Shown in pieces: positions 53,456-61,283 of a DNA stretch of 64,000 nucleotides; positions within the stretch are counted from its first letter, which is position 1; each line of letters begins with the position of its first letter. Below the pieces are notes generated by a model. The model made no database searches. It was not told where the DNA came from and saw nothing but the letters and a program-made list of their open reading frames with translations. The stretch is taken from NCBI GenBank assembly GCA_002104945.1, contig MCFH01000002.1, positions 1,116,001 through 1,180,000 on the forward strand, in the 5' to 3' direction. Position numbers and translations under genes: made by a program. This stretch comes from Piromyces finnis finn. Lineage: Eukaryota > Fungi > Neocallimastigomycota.

Positions 53456-55166
<1,711 letters not shown>

Positions 55167-55415
55167 AACTATTAAATTTAAATTATTCTTCTAACTATTA
55201 ATATAATTTTAATTTCATCATTTTACTAAAATTCGGTTATCATTTTCAAAATACATAATAAAAAAATAAAAAATAAAAATATATATATAATTTACCTCTT
55301 ATTTATTAATATTATTACTTTTTATATTAAAAATAATTGACTTTGGTATTAAAACTTTTTTTTTTTTTATTTTATTTTATCTTATTATTATTTGTTTTGT
55401 TTTGGCTTTGGATGA

Positions 55416-55427
55416 GGGGGAAAGAAT
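55416..55427 (+). repeat. Target site duplication, 5' copy (GGGGGAAAGAAT)
   Basis: Identical 12-mer immediately after the poly(A); 13 bp if the preceding A is counted. Confidence 0.92.
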
Positions 55428-55849
55428 CCCTCTTGGGAACGTGCCTTCATTTATTTAATAAATGTAGTTTCTCAAGGGGGTCTACTCATGCTCATGGTAC
55501 TGAGAGAGTAGAAAGAATTAAATCCAAGTATTGCGCAATGGATGCTTGGTGCCCTTCCCTCTTGGGAACGTGCCTTCATTTATTTAATAAATGTAGTTTC
55601 TCAAGGGGGTCTACTCATGCTCATGGTACTGAGAGAGTAGAAAGAATTAAATCCAAGTATCGCGCAATGGATGCTTGGTGCCCTCTTAGGAACGTGCCTT
55701 CATTTATTTAATAAACGTAGTTTATCAAGGGAGTCTACTCATGCTCATGGTACTGAGAGAGTAGAAAGAATTAAATCCAAGCATTGCGCAATGGATGCTT
55801 GGTTAGTCTTTAAGGGAAAATTATTAGGACTAAGCTCATGGTACTGAGC
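55428..55849 (+). repeat. Three tandem 124-nt structured monomers (55428, 55557, 55681) plus a fourth partial hairpin (55834-55849) at the LINE 5' end
   Basis: Unit CCCTCTTGGGAACGTGCCTTCATTTATTTAATAAATGTAGTTTCTCAAGGGGGTCTACTCATGCTCATGGTACTGAGAGAGTAGAAAGAATTAAATCCAAGTATTGCGCAATGGATGCTTGGTG. Unit 2 has 1 substitution; unit 3 has about 5 plus a divergent end. Confidence 0.95.
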
Positions 55850-55914
55850 GATTAAAAAACATTTTATTCATCGAATTAAGTATTTGATGAATAAGTTGAA
55901 TGTTTGATATTCAG

Positions 55915-56254
55915 GTAAGTTTGTATAGTATTTAATTAGAAGAGTAATACATTTTGTTGCTGTATTTTTCTTTTATTCATGTATTCATGTAGTACTACTC
56001 TTCTCTTGTAAGAATCCAATGTAGTCAACTTTAGCATTTGCATTGTATTTTTATATTCATGTAGCTATTGTTGTATTGTTTCTTGTAAGAGACTGATTCA
56101 CTCTACATCATGTAAAAATACTATTCACAAGCTTTCTGGTGTCGACATTCTTGATTCAAATTTTTTACCAATTTAAATATTTAATGAAAAGTAAAGTCAA
56201 ACAAGTTTAGTGTCAAAAAGCGATTCGAATTTACTAACAACAAACCAAAACTAG
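55915..56254 (+). other. Candidate spliceosomal intron in the LINE 5' UTR
   Basis: CAG|GTAAGT donor at 55915, TACTAAC branch point at 56232-56238, CTAG acceptor ending 56254 (alternative at 56280). No transcript evidence. Confidence 0.55.
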
Positions 56255-56446
56255 AATTTTTAAAGAAAATTTACAACTAGAATTCAAAAAAAAAGAAACT
56301 TTAAACAAAGCATCGTAACAATTTTTGTACTATCCAGTACTTTTAAGAAGAGAGAGAGAGACAGATTTTTTTTCCATATACGTTATATTTATAATTTTTA
56401 TTAGTATTTATTTTATATTCAATATTTTTAATTAGAATTTATTATC

Positions 56447-59400
56447 ATGTCAGTCCTTTATATTAAAGACAAGAATTATATCAGACGTGGTACCCGGTCT
56501 TATGGTATCCCCTTAGATGATATTCGCTCCTTCTTTATTCGTGGTATTCGATCATGGTCAGTAAATATGCTATGGGAAAAACTCGAGGTTATTCTAGAAG
56601 ATAAATTTAATTCAGTTATTAGTGTTAAATATTTTCAAACTTTCAATGATCACTTTTTCTTAGTCAAGGTTCATGGTTCATCAAAAGATTGTATTAAAAT
56701 CTTACACATGTTAAAGAAGAAACTTTCAGTTACCTCAATTTCCTTTTCAGCTCGTAGTAGAAGGAATCACAAATACACTTTTTCCACTCTCAAACGTAAA
56801 ATTTTAGTTTCTAATAAACATCAACATTCTATTCAACAATCATTTCAACAATCAGTTCAACAATCTCATCAACAATCCGATCTTCAACTAGATCTTCAAC
56901 AAGATCTTCAACAAGATCTTCAACAAGATTTTCAACAAGTTTCCAATCATGAAAATATTCCAGATCTACAGCAAACACAATTTCAATCTCATCATTCAAC
57001 ATTTAATTCTAATAGTTCTATCAACTCTGATAACAGTTCAATAGTTGATAGTTCTTCAGTTTCACAGCCATCTAGTAATAGTTCTACTTATTCCTCTGAT
57101 GCATCATCCATTAATAACGATGACTTTAATAATAATAATAATAGCAACGATTCTTCCTCATCCAACAAGCCTGATAACTTTTCTTTTTGTCTTAGTTGGA
57201 ACACCAATGGGTGGAATCACGAAAAGAGAGATAGTATTAGCTATTTCACAGCTATTTTCAAACCATTATTTTTATGTTTCCAAGAAACTGGTAATGGTTC
57301 TGGATCGAATACAGATTATCCTTGTCGTGTTACTTTGCGAAACTATAGACACTTTTTCAAGAAAGCTGACGAATCAGTTCCGGGAATGAGAGGTTTATAT
57401 TTAGGTTTTCACAATTCATGTCAAGCCTCACTTGAAAACTTCTCTGGAAAGTATATTATTTCTATTTATACTTTTAGTCTCTGGAATAGATTCAAATGCT
57501 CGATTGGTAATGTTTATATGCCTCATAGTCATCACAACATCTATGTTGATCATGCAAAGTTAGAAGTTCGCTTGTGGTTACAAACTCATTCATCCCATCC
57601 ATCGATTCTTGTTGGTGATTTTAATATGTCTAAAGTAAAATTATCCAACTGGTTATCAACTAATGGATTAGGAGATTGGGAAATTCTTCCGCTTAGAGGG
57701 TCTACTATCTCTTGGACTCGAGGTGATCAATCTTCCGACATTGACCATGCTCTTATCAATTCGAAGATGAAAGATCTTATTCACTCAGGATCATTTATAA
57801 ATAATTTTTATCCTGTATCAGACCATAAGCCACTTCTTATTAATGGTAAAATTATTCCTATGGAAGATTTTTCTAATGACTTTAATGTTCCTAAGAAAAT
57901 TCTGAAATGGAATAGATTAAAATGTATTGAGGAAAAGGAATCTATTCTCAGTCATAATAAATTCCAAATACTTTCAGCAAAATCCAACGATCCTAATGTT
58001 TCTACAGATGAACTTTCCAAAGAGTTTACTTCAACTGCTTTTTCAATTGCAGACGAGCTCAGTATTACTTCAGCAAATAATGTTATTAAGTCTTCATTTC
58101 ATATTTCACAACAAATTTTTAATCTTCAAAAAATCAAAATGAAGTTGTATAAGAGATTTAAAAAAGAAAGAATTTATGATATAGATGAATTTATTAAAAG
58201 AATTAAAATCTACCGTAAGCTCATTGATTACATCCACAAAAGATGTAATGAATTTAGGAAGCAAGAATATCTTCATTGGATTAAAACAGGATGTGAGTAT
58301 ATGAAGAGTCATAATCCTAAGAAGGCCTGGAAATGGATCAAGAAAACTGCAAAAATTGGAAAAGATTCTTTCTTTATTGCTCAACCAATTAAAAATAAAA
58401 ATGGAGAATTAGTTGTTGCTACGGAAGAACAACTAGATGTGTGGCATGATCATTTCGAAAATCTTGCATCAGACCCAAGTGGTGTAAGTCTTGATTTGGA
58501 GCATTGGTATGAAGAACCAACGAATAAACGTTTTTCACTTCCTATGCTTGATGAGTGGGATATCAACCAAGATATTAGTATTGATGAAGTCAAGTCAGCT
58601 ATCCTCACTACTCCAAATTATAAAGCATCAGGTCCGGATGGTATTCCAATTGAATTTTACAAAGCATTAGTTCCATCAAGTAATGATTCTAATAATGCTA
58701 CAGATAATAATTCTTCTGGTAATACTACTTCAGATAATGATGCTCATGGTTTAAATTTTATTCTTAAATTATTCAACCGTATTTGGGATGGAGATTTCCC
58801 CAACTCATGGAATGAATCCAGTATTGTTTCTATTCCTAAGAAGGGAGATTTGACAGATTGTGATAACTATCGAGGTATATCACTTATCAATAATGGTATT
58901 AAGTTGATTTCCAAAATTGTCACCACTAGAATCTCAGAATATGGTTTAAAGAATAATTTCATTAGACCTGAACAATTTGGTTTTCGAAAAAAGGAAGAAA
59001 GTATTAGTCTTTTCATTTCAATCCAAGAAATATGCCGTAGACGTCAATTAGATAATAAAGAGACATATTTGGCCTTTTTAGATCTCAGGAAAGCATACGA
59101 TTCAGTCCCAATCGGTAATATTCTCCATAAATTAGATTGTTTAGGAATCCGAGGTAAGAGTCTACAATTTATCAAAAATTTATATTTAACATCTAAGGCT
59201 AATGTCAAATTAGATGGACAATTCTCGAAATCTTTTGATGTGAAGAAAGGAGTCCGTCAAGGTTGCCCTCTTTCTCCTATTCTCTTTAATCTCTTTATTA
59301 ATGATATATTTAGAGAGTGCGAAGATCTAGGAGTCAGTTTAGGTGACACTCGATGCTGTGGTGGACTTTTTGCAGATGATATAGTTATTTGTGCTTCAAC

Positions 59401-60994
59401 AAGAGGATGCTTAAAAAAGATGCTTAGAAGAGTTAATGAATGGGCATTGTATAATGAAATGGAATTTGGTATCCAGAAATGTTCAACGATGGTGATTCGT
59501 CCTGAATCAATAGAAAATCAGAACAAGAGAGATCCAACATTTTACTTAGCAGGACAACCCATTCCAACTACTGATTGCTATACTTATCTTGGTGTTCCAT
59601 TTGATAAGAATCTGTCCCTTAAACCAGTAATTAAAGCTCTTAATAACAAGGTTTTGAAAGGGCTTTTCTCAGTCAGTAAATTCTTAAGAAATCCTAATAT
59701 TCCTATTCCTTTCAAAAAACTAGTACTTAACTCACAAGTGATTAGCAGAGTTTCATACTTTGCACCATTACTTGGATCCAACAAAGCTAGGTCTAGGATT
59801 GCTCAGAAGCATGTTAACAAAGGAATACGATGGGTTGCCGGAGTTCATAAAGCTGTATCGTTTATATCTTTATACTCTATTTCAAAAGATTTGAATATTC
59901 CTCCATTGTCAGCCAAATGTGCGTTAGCTCAGGTTAGATGTTTTAACAAATGGAAAAACTCAAATTGTATTATCTCACACCTTGTCAATTACATTCCTAA
60001 ATTTAGAAAATACACGTGGTGCAAATCAAGTAGGACACTTGATAAAAAATTAAAGAAACATGGAGATGTTAAAGCAGTTAAAAACTTTTATTGGAAAGAT
60101 CTCAAAGGGAATTCAATCAAAGCGCAATATTATGATGATAATAAATTTATTGAAACTAAAGATTTTATTAAATTATGTTATGAGTACCCAGAGTTTGCCT
60201 ATGGCTTCTACTGGCTATTGAAAGCAAGAAGCGGATACAAGTTGGATGCTAGAGTTGCCAAAGCTGCCAAATTTGTTGATCCAGTTTGTCCTAACTACTG
60301 TCCATGTTGCAAGTGTGGAGATCAAAGTATTAAACATTGGTTATTAGATTGTCCAACATTTAGAGATATCCGTATTAAACATTATGATTCTATAGTCCAG
60401 CTATTAAATTTTTTCAGTCAACGTAATTCCAATAGTCCTATCAATAATAATGAAATTGATAATATCAGTAGAGATAGTAATAACATTAATAGTAATAGTA
60501 ACAATAGTAGTAATAACAATAGTAATAGTAGCAATAGTAATAGTAACAATAGTAATAATAACAATAATAGAAATAATAATATTAGTAATGATAGCAATAG
60601 TGAAGATAATAATTCTAATTTAGATAGTAATTTAGTTAATGATAGTAATAGTTCTAATAATCCGGTGAATATTAATGTGTATGATTATTCTAGTGTGTGC
60701 AGTAAAATATTTAAATTCCTTCTTGGGGGAAGAAGTTTTAACAATATTAATTACAATTCAAGGGAATGGAAAGAACTTTGTAAGCGTCAGATTCAATCTG
60801 ATACTAACGAAGGAACACCATTCTTGACGGTAACCGCGGAACTTCTAACCAAAATCATGCCTTTTGCTATTGGCCAGCAATGGTCAATGTTCAAAAGGTT
60901 TGAAGCAACATCCAAGAGCGTCAATGCTGAAGAAACAGTAAGACAGGCCAGGAGGGCCAGCGCAACCAATGGAGATCATAATTTTGTTCCATGA
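56447..60994 (+). CDS. LINE polyprotein, 1515 aa: RRM-like N-terminus, AP endonuclease, reverse transcriptase, C-terminal Cys/His motif
   Basis: APE: CLSWNTNG, CFQET, GNVYMP, VGDFN, SDIDH, SDHKP. RT: KASGPDGIP, IPKKGDLTDCDNYRGISL, QFGFR, FLDLRKAYDSV, GVRQGCPLSPILFNLFIND, LFADD, YTYLGV. C-terminal CPCCKCGDQSIKHWLLDCP. Confidence 0.97.
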   Translation: MSVLYIKDKNYIRRGTRSYGIPLDDIRSFFIRGIRSWSVNMLWEKLEVILEDKFNSVISVKYFQTFNDHFFLVKVHGSSKDCIKILHMLKKKLSVTSISFSARSRRNHKYTFSTLKRKILVSNKHQHSIQQSFQQSVQQSHQQSDLQLDLQQDLQQDLQQDFQQVSNHENIPDLQQTQFQSHHSTFNSNSSINSDNSSIVDSSSVSQPSSNSSTYSSDASSINNDDFNNNNNSNDSSSSNKPDNFSFCLSWNTNGWNHEKRDSISYFTAIFKPLFLCFQETGNGSGSNTDYPCRVTLRNYRHFFKKADESVPGMRGLYLGFHNSCQASLENFSGKYIISIYTFSLWNRFKCSIGNVYMPHSHHNIYVDHAKLEVRLWLQTHSSHPSILVGDFNMSKVKLSNWLSTNGLGDWEILPLRGSTISWTRGDQSSDIDHALINSKMKDLIHSGSFINNFYPVSDHKPLLINGKIIPMEDFSNDFNVPKKILKWNRLKCIEEKESILSHNKFQILSAKSNDPNVSTDELSKEFTSTAFSIADELSITSANNVIKSSFHISQQIFNLQKIKMKLYKRFKKERIYDIDEFIKRIKIYRKLIDYIHKRCNEFRKQEYLHWIKTGCEYMKSHNPKKAWKWIKKTAKIGKDSFFIAQPIKNKNGELVVATEEQLDVWHDHFENLASDPSGVSLDLEHWYEEPTNKRFSLPMLDEWDINQDISIDEVKSAILTTPNYKASGPDGIPIEFYKALVPSSNDSNNATDNNSSGNTTSDNDAHGLNFILKLFNRIWDGDFPNSWNESSIVSIPKKGDLTDCDNYRGISLINNGIKLISKIVTTRISEYGLKNNFIRPEQFGFRKKEESISLFISIQEICRRRQLDNKETYLAFLDLRKAYDSVPIGNILHKLDCLGIRGKSLQFIKNLYLTSKANVKLDGQFSKSFDVKKGVRQGCPLSPILFNLFINDIFRECEDLGVSLGDTRCCGGLFADDIVICASTRGCLKKMLRRVNEWALYNEMEFGIQKCSTMVIRPESIENQNKRDPTFYLAGQPIPTTDCYTYLGVPFDKNLSLKPVIKALNNKVLKGLFSVSKFLRNPNIPIPFKKLVLNSQVISRVSYFAPLLGSNKARSRIAQKHVNKGIRWVAGVHKAVSFISLYSISKDLNIPPLSAKCALAQVRCFNKWKNSNCIISHLVNYIPKFRKYTWCKSSRTLDKKLKKHGDVKAVKNFYWKDLKGNSIKAQYYDDNKFIETKDFIKLCYEYPEFAYGFYWLLKARSGYKLDARVAKAAKFVDPVCPNYCPCCKCGDQSIKHWLLDCPTFRDIRIKHYDSIVQLLNFFSQRNSNSPINNNEIDNISRDSNNINSNSNNSSNNNSNSSNSNSNNSNNNNNRNNNISNDSNSEDNNSNLDSNLVNDSNSSNNPVNINVYDYSSVCSKIFKFLLGGRSFNNINYNSREWKELCKRQIQSDTNEGTPFLTVTAELLTKIMPFAIGQQWSMFKRFEATSKSVNAEETVRQARRASATNGDHNFVP

Positions 60995-61227
60995 CAAAAT
61001 TTTGATCTTTGGCTCGGTGTCCCATTGGAAGTCAAATACAATTATTATACTTTAGTATGATAGTGGCTTTCTTACTTTAATTAAATTACTAGAATACATT
61101 ATACCCAATTTTTATTCATTTGTGTTTATTTAAACATATTTTTTTTATTTTTATTTATTTTTAATTTTTTATTACATGTATTATAATTTTAATTAAATTA
61201 ATAATAAAGTTTAAAATATTTGATGCC

Positions 61228-61271
<44 letters not shown>

Positions 61272-61274
<3 letters not shown>

Positions 61275-61283
61275 GGAAAGAAT
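61272..61283 (+). repeat. Target site duplication, 3' copy (GGGGGAAAGAAT)
   Basis: Directly follows the 41-nt poly(A). Confidence 0.92.

Follow-up and report, generated by a model that had tools for sequence, protein, structure and literature searches.

What do the three near-identical tandem units at the 5' end of a LINE in the 64,000-nt stretch of DNA analysed here (the window) do, and do they act as DNA, as RNA or as both? A preliminary description had taken them for an unclassified structured RNA, a repeated internal promoter or both at once. The reading that we favor, and to which we assign a probability of about 0.45, is that each monomer is a copy of a ~85-125-nt 5'-terminal cis-acting RNA domain that would define a LINE clade, with both promoter and RNA roles.

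The repeats are well delimited. Tandem Repeats Finder places a 3.0-copy tandem array at 55427-55803 with 95% matches, and the three aligned monomers have a mean column identity of 96%. The array forms a GC island, with a GC fraction of 0.40-0.42 vs 0.10-0.15 in its flanks. The unit length of 124 nt given in the preliminary description is right for monomers 2 and 3 but not for monomer 1, which reaches 129 nt through an extra CCCTT; monomers 1 and 2 score 148.7 and 150 bits, respectively, with the covariance model R1. That the element begins at nucleotide 1 of monomer 1 is now fixed by its 12-bp target-site duplication, which sets element nucleotide 1 at 55428, the first C of that monomer, and the insertion is a complete, full-length, target-site-duplicated LINE (Table 1). 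The degenerate partial unit that follows the array has neither a partner for the loop contact described below nor the third hairpin, and in its region 55834-55858 is matched by unit positions 63-87 in blastn. Further downstream, a leader block at ~55964-56125 is conserved in the related elements L009, L067, L026, L002, L021, L007 and L001 (blastn), and the leader as a whole runs for 1019 nt before the ORF.

Table 1. Features of the LINE insertion and of its 5' array, in window positions; structural elements are given for monomer 2.
Feature	Positions	Strand	Description
Target-site duplication, left copy GGGGGAAAGAAT	55416-55427	+	Identical 12-mer recurs at 61272-61283
Monomer 1 (u1)	55428-55556	+	129 nt: 124-nt unit plus CCCTT at the 3' junction with u2
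Monomer 2 (u2)	55557-55680	+	124 nt; nearest to the family consensus
H1, monomer 2	55557-55609	+	Unit 1-12 pairs with 42-53; minimum-energy fold
Loop contact, 5' strand GUGCC	55570-55574	+	In the H1 interior loop, unit 14-18
H2, monomer 2	55610-55641	+	7-bp lower stem, 4-bp upper stem, hexaloop UGGUAC
Loop contact, 3' strand GGUAC	55625-55629	+	H2 loop positions 2-6, unit 69-73
H3, monomer 2	55653-55678	+	9-bp stem, loop GCGCAAUG
Monomer 3 (u3)	55681-55804	+	124 nt; four private pair-breaking substitutions in H1 and cap
Degenerate partial unit after the array	55805-55852	+	6-bp stem TTAGTC/GACTAA, then H2-like hairpin GCTCA-TGGTAC-TGAGC
Non-repeated remainder of the 5' UTR	55853-56446	+	Follows the array
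Single ORF, 1515 aa	56447-60994	+	Ferredoxin-like domain, apurinic-type endonuclease, reverse transcriptase, CCHC
Poly(A) tail	61231-61271	+	41 A
Target-site duplication, right copy GGGGGAAAGAAT	61272-61283	+	Directly after the poly(A)

The monomers fold strongly as RNA. RNAfold gives monomer 2 a minimum-energy fold of -45.8 kcal/mol (z = -5.6), a stability matched by 0 of 200 dinucleotide shuffles, while its minus strand reaches -32.8 kcal/mol (z = -3.8). The three hairpins H1, H2 and H3 drawn in the preliminary description are reproduced exactly in this fold; inside H1, unit 13-20 is left as an unpaired 5' strand and unit 21-37 forms a cap hairpin. The 5-bp contact proposed between the H1 interior loop and the H2 loop is likewise feasible: GTGCC (unit 14-18) and GGTAC (unit 69-73) can form 5 bp, one of them G·U, and the partner strands are kept in every lineage examined.

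Comparison of the three monomers with one another is far less informative. Two substitutions in H3 had been put forward as conversions of U·G wobbles to C-G pairs; both changes are correctly described, but as covariation they are weak, given that monomer 3 also carries four disruptive changes and that the H3 "C" of monomer 2 is the minority letter among genomic copies. The private substitutions of monomer 3 (G8A, T36C, C44A and G52A, in H1 and the cap) all four break pairs, so not every monomer is under constraint, and the fold energy of this monomer is -32.0 kcal/mol. At three of the changed positions (55716, 55724 and 55732), contigs of the RNA runs X6 and X7 carry the consensus letter, as does most of the DNA-run depth at 55732. 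There is thus no real covariation within the three monomers alone.

The sequencing runs themselves were read as assembled contigs, from which strand and transcript ends are not readable; at that level, the element, monomers included, is present in RNA-library contigs, and its upstream flank is absent in two of three RNA runs. The LINE family is extremely abundant in the DNA run, with about 11,000 matching contigs. One contig joins foreign sequence directly to the monomer start at 55681, and another makes such a join 7 nt before a monomer start.

The protein places the element among L1-like LINEs. The 1515-aa ORF has a reverse-transcriptase domain and a C-terminal CCHC motif, its apurinic-type endonuclease domain was assigned through precomputed Pfam hits of its relatives, and human L1 ORF2p is the closest solved structure. 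Its top relatives are metagenome-assembly proteins with 54-70% identity, the closest named ones come from Orpinomyces and Neocallimastix (43-44% identity), and gut metagenome runs contain parts of the element sequence. The clade is an APE-type, L1-like one whose hosts are very AT-rich early-diverging fungi, most likely anaerobic gut fungi (Neocallimastigomycota). The N-terminus of the ORF is modelled as a ferredoxin/RRM-like domain with pLDDT >90 for residues ~30-100, the model finding weak fold matches only; speculatively, such a domain could bind RNA, which would make it a candidate partner of the 5' module. A neighbouring aspartate aminotransferase, which matches chytrid-grade fungi best, supports the same host assignment.

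To look beyond a single insertion, we fetched 87 contigs encoding related proteins. Contigs from gut and rumen metagenomes contain relatives, at 40-64% protein identity, that carry the module at their own 5' end. In every relative whose 5' end is present, a segment that is richer in GC and folds strongly lies on the same strand as the ORF, 600-1000 nt upstream of it, and the modules begin with a C-run that is always CCC(C). Within subfamilies, independent insertions share the same first C in different flanks (L002/L085/L082, L001/L010 and L013/L014), and because they start there whatever the flank, it appears that the module itself determines the RNA's 5' end.

When 11 modules were folded from the first C without constraints, all 11 formed H1 and, directly after it, H2 with an apical loop of 6 nt. 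The H1 strand available for the contact stays unpaired in most of these folds, and most modules also form a cap hairpin inside H1 and the third hairpin, H3. These last two parts vary between lineages: the cap hairpin is absent in type A modules, and H3 is absent in L014, L002, L016 and L082. Where H3 is found, its loop GCGCAAUG is invariant on differing stems (the window, L017, L087, L001, L010, L021 and L026), and each occurrence is in the 5' region and in sense orientation. The covariance model R1, for which the window and L017 were the sole sources, recovers L021, L010, L026 and L001 with E = 1e-3 to 1e-2 and detects both type A and type B modules at E of about 1e-3. Tandem 5' units are also seen in other lineages, with a period of ~131 nt in L086 and 52/109 nt in L032; in the window family, tandem units arose independently of those in L086 and L032. 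The type D modules (L083, L086), like the L032 repeats, have the C-run helix start and do not fit the H2/contact scheme, and all of these were excluded from the pair counts.

Alignment across module types had to follow the structure, as MAFFT is not faithful to it here; model R1 misaligns H2 and, for L087, also H1, and pairs were therefore counted with our own script, after exclusion of the near-duplicates L073 (same contig as L001), L085 (close to L002) and L013 (close to L014). Helix registers across lineages were set by hand, which biases the percent-paired figures upward, and the lineages are related, so that pair counts are not independent events; read in that light, 91 of 96 H1 cells are paired, with both-sided changes at 8 of 12 positions across 10 lineages, and the upper stem of H2 is paired in 50 of 50 cells, with both-sided changes at 5 of 6 positions. 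The lower stem of H2 is paired throughout (75/75 cells) with sequences that are unrelated between types and have no common register. For H3, in a register anchored on its loop, 77 of 82 cells are paired and both sides have changed at 9 of 11 positions; this covariation becomes smaller when the AACATTAT-type stem is taken as an L017-type stem with a 2-bp insertion. Strand also matters: the pair table contains 22 G·U pairs vs 3 A·C mismatches, and in 14 of 15 modules the sense strand gives a more stable fold than its antisense counterpart, from which we conclude that the signal belongs to the sense RNA and not to a DNA palindrome.

The loop contact changes its sequence while keeping its place. 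Always on H2 loop positions 2-6, it is paired in 55 of 55 cells with both-sided changes at 5 of 5 positions, and it comes in six sequence versions: GUGCC/GGUAC in the window, GUAUC/GGUAC in L017, ACACC/GGUGU in L087, CCGUA/UACGG in L001 (a wobble variant), L010, L021 and L014, GUACU/AGUAC in L002, L082, L016 and L026, and CUAGG/CCUAG in L020. When all loci were scanned blindly for a C-run helix with a hexaloop hairpin after it, 10 of 10 gut-fungal LINE 5' ends had the contact, vs 1 of 5 look-alike folds in unrelated contigs. Non-cognate combinations of contact strands often also reach 5/5, and per-lineage shuffle probabilities are 2-22%; with a palindrome-like core (GUAC, CUAG) and tolerance of wobble pairs, the test of cognate vs non-cognate contacts discriminates poorly.

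Judged from sequence comparison, the evidence for the predicted helices H1 and H2 is strong, and that for the putative loop contact and H3 is moderate. The domain as we read it consists of H1 starting from the C-run, the H2 hexaloop hairpin and the predicted 5-bp contact, with H3 added in many lineages; it starts at element nucleotide 1, and its fold is conserved and, by all appearances, undescribed. The palindrome-like loops of H2 (GUAC, CUAG) and H3 (GCGC) might also make contacts between monomers or between RNAs.

The fold does not correspond to an RNA family already in Rfam. Rfam 15 gave nothing but a chance miRNA match outside the array when 54500-57500 was searched at E <= 10, and no family matched six relatives at E <= 1. 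Together with a fold that related LINEs keep at their 5' terminus through compensatory changes, this agrees with the preliminary description, which had called the repeat an unclassified structured RNA and had recognized no hammerhead, HDV, twister, pistol or hairpin core on either strand. HDV-like ribozymes are nested double pseudoknots whose parts follow the order P1-P2-P3/L3-P1'-P4-J4/2-P2', and their P1 of ~7 bp starts at +1. Neither the HDV nor the drz models of Rfam matched 54500-57500 (E <= 10) or the six relatives (E <= 1), and the architecture differs: in our module, the contact partner is part of the H2 hexaloop and is enclosed by the H2 stems instead of following a closed P4; a P3-like hairpin is missing from type A modules; and H1, which does start at +1 to +3, spans 8-12 bp. 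Two positions of the CUGAGAG found in H2 differ from the hammerhead core CUGANGA, and the fold lacks a three-way junction. At permissive thresholds, Rfam gave no match to hammerhead, twister, twister-sister, pistol, hatchet, hairpin or VS ribozymes.

These comparisons bear on the idea of a self-cleaving ribozyme of a new class, whose cut at the module's own 5' edge would free the LINE RNA from upstream transcripts. Such a role would suit a pseudoknotted fold that begins at nucleotide 1-3 in all lineages, and the strand order of H1 5' arm, contact strand, H1 3' arm and contact partner recalls P1/P2 of HDV; in L1Tc, moreover, promoter and ribozyme share the first 77 nt (PMC3383444, PMC3185411). 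Against it stand the missing Rfam matches and the architectural differences above, and also the insertion itself: it is full length and retains three intact monomers, so that the RNA from which it was copied had escaped cleavage at the starts of its internal monomers. The self-cleaving option raised in the preliminary description is therefore not supported: the repeat shows neither an HDV-like topology nor any of the known catalytic cores. Efficient self-cleavage at the 5' end is unlikely, and we consider a new ribozyme class very improbable.

A protective role for the 5' end is a further explanation, which we consider quite unlikely. Here, the compact pseudoknotted fold would stall 5'-to-3' exonucleases or hide the 5' end, and tandem copies would provide redundancy, as flavivirus exonuclease-resistant RNAs also occur duplicated. 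The extreme 5' position, a terminal helix that sequesters the first bases, the loop contact and the tandem arrangement all suit this idea, and it is compatible with persisting arrays and with copies beginning at monomer boundaries, such as the loose end at 55681. In known exonuclease-resistant RNAs, however, a ring encircles the 5' end and the fold contains a three-way junction; the module has no similarity to these folds and no match in Rfam. Taken more broadly, the proposal that the module is a new RNA that creates or guards the LINE 5' end, be it as an undescribed ribozyme class or as an exonuclease-stalling fold, and is in addition a DNA promoter, seems to us unlikely.

The leader raises the possibility of a translation element, that is, an IRES-like or ribosome-shunting platform that compensates for 1019 nt full of upstream AUGs. 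The leader contains 23 of these, five per intact monomer, and a stable 5'-terminal helix that would hinder scanning; helix and AUGs together fit poorly with an efficient cap-translated mRNA, which also counts against the reading that we favor. The number of upstream AUGs nevertheless matches the 20 expected from composition, and 640-1000 nt, with a conserved non-repeated leader among them, separate the module from the start codon, so that we regard this as the least probable of the explanations considered.

In its pure form, the promoter explanation holds that the repeats act only as double-stranded DNA, offering factor sites, some of them palindromic, with the hairpins as a by-product. Tandem 5' monomers are the classic format of the mouse L1 promoter, and the GC content of the units relative to their flanks and the precise 5' ends of independent insertions point the same way. 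We also counted in its favor that ATTGCGCAAT in H3 resembles what we take to be a bZIP (C/EBP-type) palindrome; this reading of the H3 loop fails, as the hairpin axis is displaced by 2 nt from the palindrome and relatives show TATGCGCAAT in its place, with only half of the site conserved. What a pure promoter does not account for is that the stems change their sequence completely yet stay paired; nor would a DNA palindrome predict the excess of G·U over A·C or the greater stability of the sense strand, and complementarity between a loop and an interior strand is meaningless in duplex DNA. We therefore consider a promoter without any RNA role unlikely. As one part of a larger picture, on the other hand, the repeated internal promoter named in the preliminary description is plausible, as it would fit both the precise 5' ends and the tandem amplification.

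Because a promoter alone leaves the covariation of the sense-RNA helices and of the contact unexplained, we favor a dual module: a promoter unit in DNA that, once transcribed, would be a 5'-terminal domain recognised by the element's own ribonucleoprotein. Most economically, an internal promoter would start transcription at the module's own first base. Tandem amplification would multiply the promoter units and, as for mouse L1 monomers, insure against 5' truncation. In the RNA, the fold would be a compact 5' cis element, preferably understood as a site that the element's own protein would recognise or that would mark the 5' end for it, much like the 5' pseudoknot RNA of R2, and the invariant H3 loop GCGCAAUG would be a likely sequence-specific protein contact. 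Both functional steps, the promoter and the recognition by protein, are hypotheses.

Among known elements, the A, Tf and Gf monomers of mouse and rat L1 are similar in layout. They too are head-to-tail units of 100-200 nt at the 5' end, followed by a non-repeated leader, and are presumed to be repeated internal promoters; a number of units that varies between copies may be a further likeness. The tandem head-to-tail units at the 5' end of our full-length element correspond to this mouse-L1-type arrangement. They have no sequence relation to the L1 monomers, which are defined by promoter activity and not by a conserved RNA fold, whereas the window unit starts exactly at nucleotide 1 and its helices covary across single-copy lineages. 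The A-module of Dictyostelium TRE5-A, also from an AT-rich genome, is likewise repeated at the 5' end and has promoter activity. TRE5 elements insert ~50 bp upstream of tRNA genes; ARAGORN found no tRNA gene in the 64-kb window, and the named protein relatives belong to the Neocallimastigomycota, so that this is not a Dictyostelium-type TRE element.

Structured RNAs at LINE 5' ends offer the second set of parallels. According to work from the Eickbush laboratory, the R2 5' pseudoknot reportedly binds the element's protein and acts late in integration. R2 differs from our element in its restriction-like endonuclease and its site specificity, and its pseudoknot sits at the start of the ORF, not at nucleotide 1, with no similarity to the window module in sequence or fold. 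What the two share is a conserved pseudoknotted RNA near the 5' end of a single-ORF LINE (reviewed in PMC12203849). The HDV-like ribozymes of R2, RTE and Baggins do start at nucleotide 1, as the module does, and likewise form a pseudoknot between the first helix and a downstream strand, but their helix order, P3/L3, P4 and covariance models are not matched by the window module. A precedent for a combined function is Pr77 with L1TcRz in the L1Tc/NARTc elements of Trypanosoma cruzi, a clade-wide module at the first nucleotides that is both an internal promoter and a pseudoknotted RNA (PMC3383444, PMC3185411, PMC4748587). Like the window module, it is short, occupies the first nucleotides of a LINE and is common to a clade of elements. 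The Pr77 RNA is, however, an HDV-like ribozyme and is not tandemly repeated, while the window fold fits neither the HDV architecture nor the Rfam models. Literature searches on anaerobic-fungal LINEs and their 5' modules returned nothing relevant.

In conclusion, LINEs must rebuild their own 5' end in every copy cycle, and to our knowledge the way in which this end is defined is known in few clades, through the promoters of human and mouse L1, the initiator-type promoters of insect elements, HDV-like ribozymes and the R2 5' RNA. The sequences compared here suggest that a whole fungal LINE clade carries a covariation-supported, pseudoknotted RNA domain that begins at nucleotide 1, is absent from Rfam and has been multiplied in tandem at least twice independently, so that the two known themes of 5' monomers and 5' structured LINE RNAs would be combined in a new form. 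The 5-bp contact and the invariant 8-nt loop offer a mutable target for asking whether the 5' end of a LINE is read as RNA as well as DNA. We know of almost no characterised promoters or cis-RNA elements in anaerobic gut fungi, and a strong, compact and highly repeated 5' module of this kind could serve genetic tools in these organisms.

Conservation at the nucleotide level is found at the 3' end of the single ORF of the window LINE, where the final ~50 nt are near-identical in nucleotide sequence, synonymous sites included, among the window element and four relatives encoded on gut or rumen metagenome contigs (L002, L003, L082 and L085), with an overall protein identity between the window LINE and these relatives of only about 57-61%. 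This stretch includes GGCC-AGNAG-GGCC as well as AGCGCAACCAAU, which has GCGCAA in common with the loop of H3, the third hairpin of the 5'-terminal monomers, and we consider it a candidate RNA element that may be recognised jointly with H3. A hairpin that spans the stop codon has analogues of differing sequence in relatives (GATCATAATTT/AAATTATGATC in L002; GAGACC/GGTCTC in L082), and is likely a stem-loop by which the reverse transcriptase recognises the 3' end.

Features of the window LINE and of the 5' leaders of related elements
Feature	Location	Description
Leader block	window 55964-56125	outside the repeats; DNA-level conservation in at least 7 relatives
N-terminal domain	window 56447-56760	ORF residues 1-105; clade-wide conservation
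ORF-end stretch	window 60923-60975	candidate RNA element
Hairpin across stop codon	window 60973-61008	15 bp, one mismatch, loop TCCATG
Leader repeat	L086 1-185	at least 1.4 copies of a ~131-nt unit that begins with a C-run helix
Leader repeat	L032 518-788	4.9 copies of a 52-nt unit
Leader repeat	L083 90-187	internal duplication of 49 nt

The non-repeated leader of the window LINE also holds a conserved block, within which CTTGTAAGA occurs twice. Seven ATGTA motifs are present in the whole 5' UTR, five of them inside this block or just ahead of it, and six of the seven form minimal upstream ORFs consisting of AUG and a stop codon (ATGTAG or ATGTAA). The block is a candidate for the actual promoter or enhancer, or else for a region of translational control. 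At leader positions 55915-56280, a possible intron, the two RNA-library contigs that span the interval (55752-56292; 55688-56312) show no splicing, and RNA joints are not reported for it. Tandem repeats are also present in the leaders of other lineages of this clade of L1-like LINEs (L086, L032 and L083), so the tandem format is of repeated origin.

At the protein level, the modeled N-terminal domain of the ORF adopts a ferredoxin/RRM-like beta-alpha-beta-beta-alpha-beta arrangement, with pLDDT >90 at approximately residues 30-100. Fold matches to this domain are all weak, with the RRM of human L1 ORF1p among them at rank 44, and the window LINE has no separate ORF1.

In the window, a nearly perfect (TTA)105 microsatellite (54016-54329) lies 1.1 kb upstream of the LINE insertion. 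Upstream of the 5'-terminal folded module of L017, positions 1-48 encode a LINE endonuclease motif fragment, VSDHKPNLL, and the L017 element is therefore nested within another copy of a related LINE. Ahead of the L013 module, positions 42-71 comprise the remnant of an Illumina adapter (GCTCTTCCGATCT) and, after it, 16 nt identical to 16 nt within the H1 cap (the hairpin inside H1) of L002; this appears to be an artefactual or chimeric contig of the public assembly. Finally, a 20-kb gut metagenome contig, L084, carries an actin gene fragment (1-411) that precedes a related LINE by 1.4 kb, and this fragment could serve to place the host of that LINE taxonomically.
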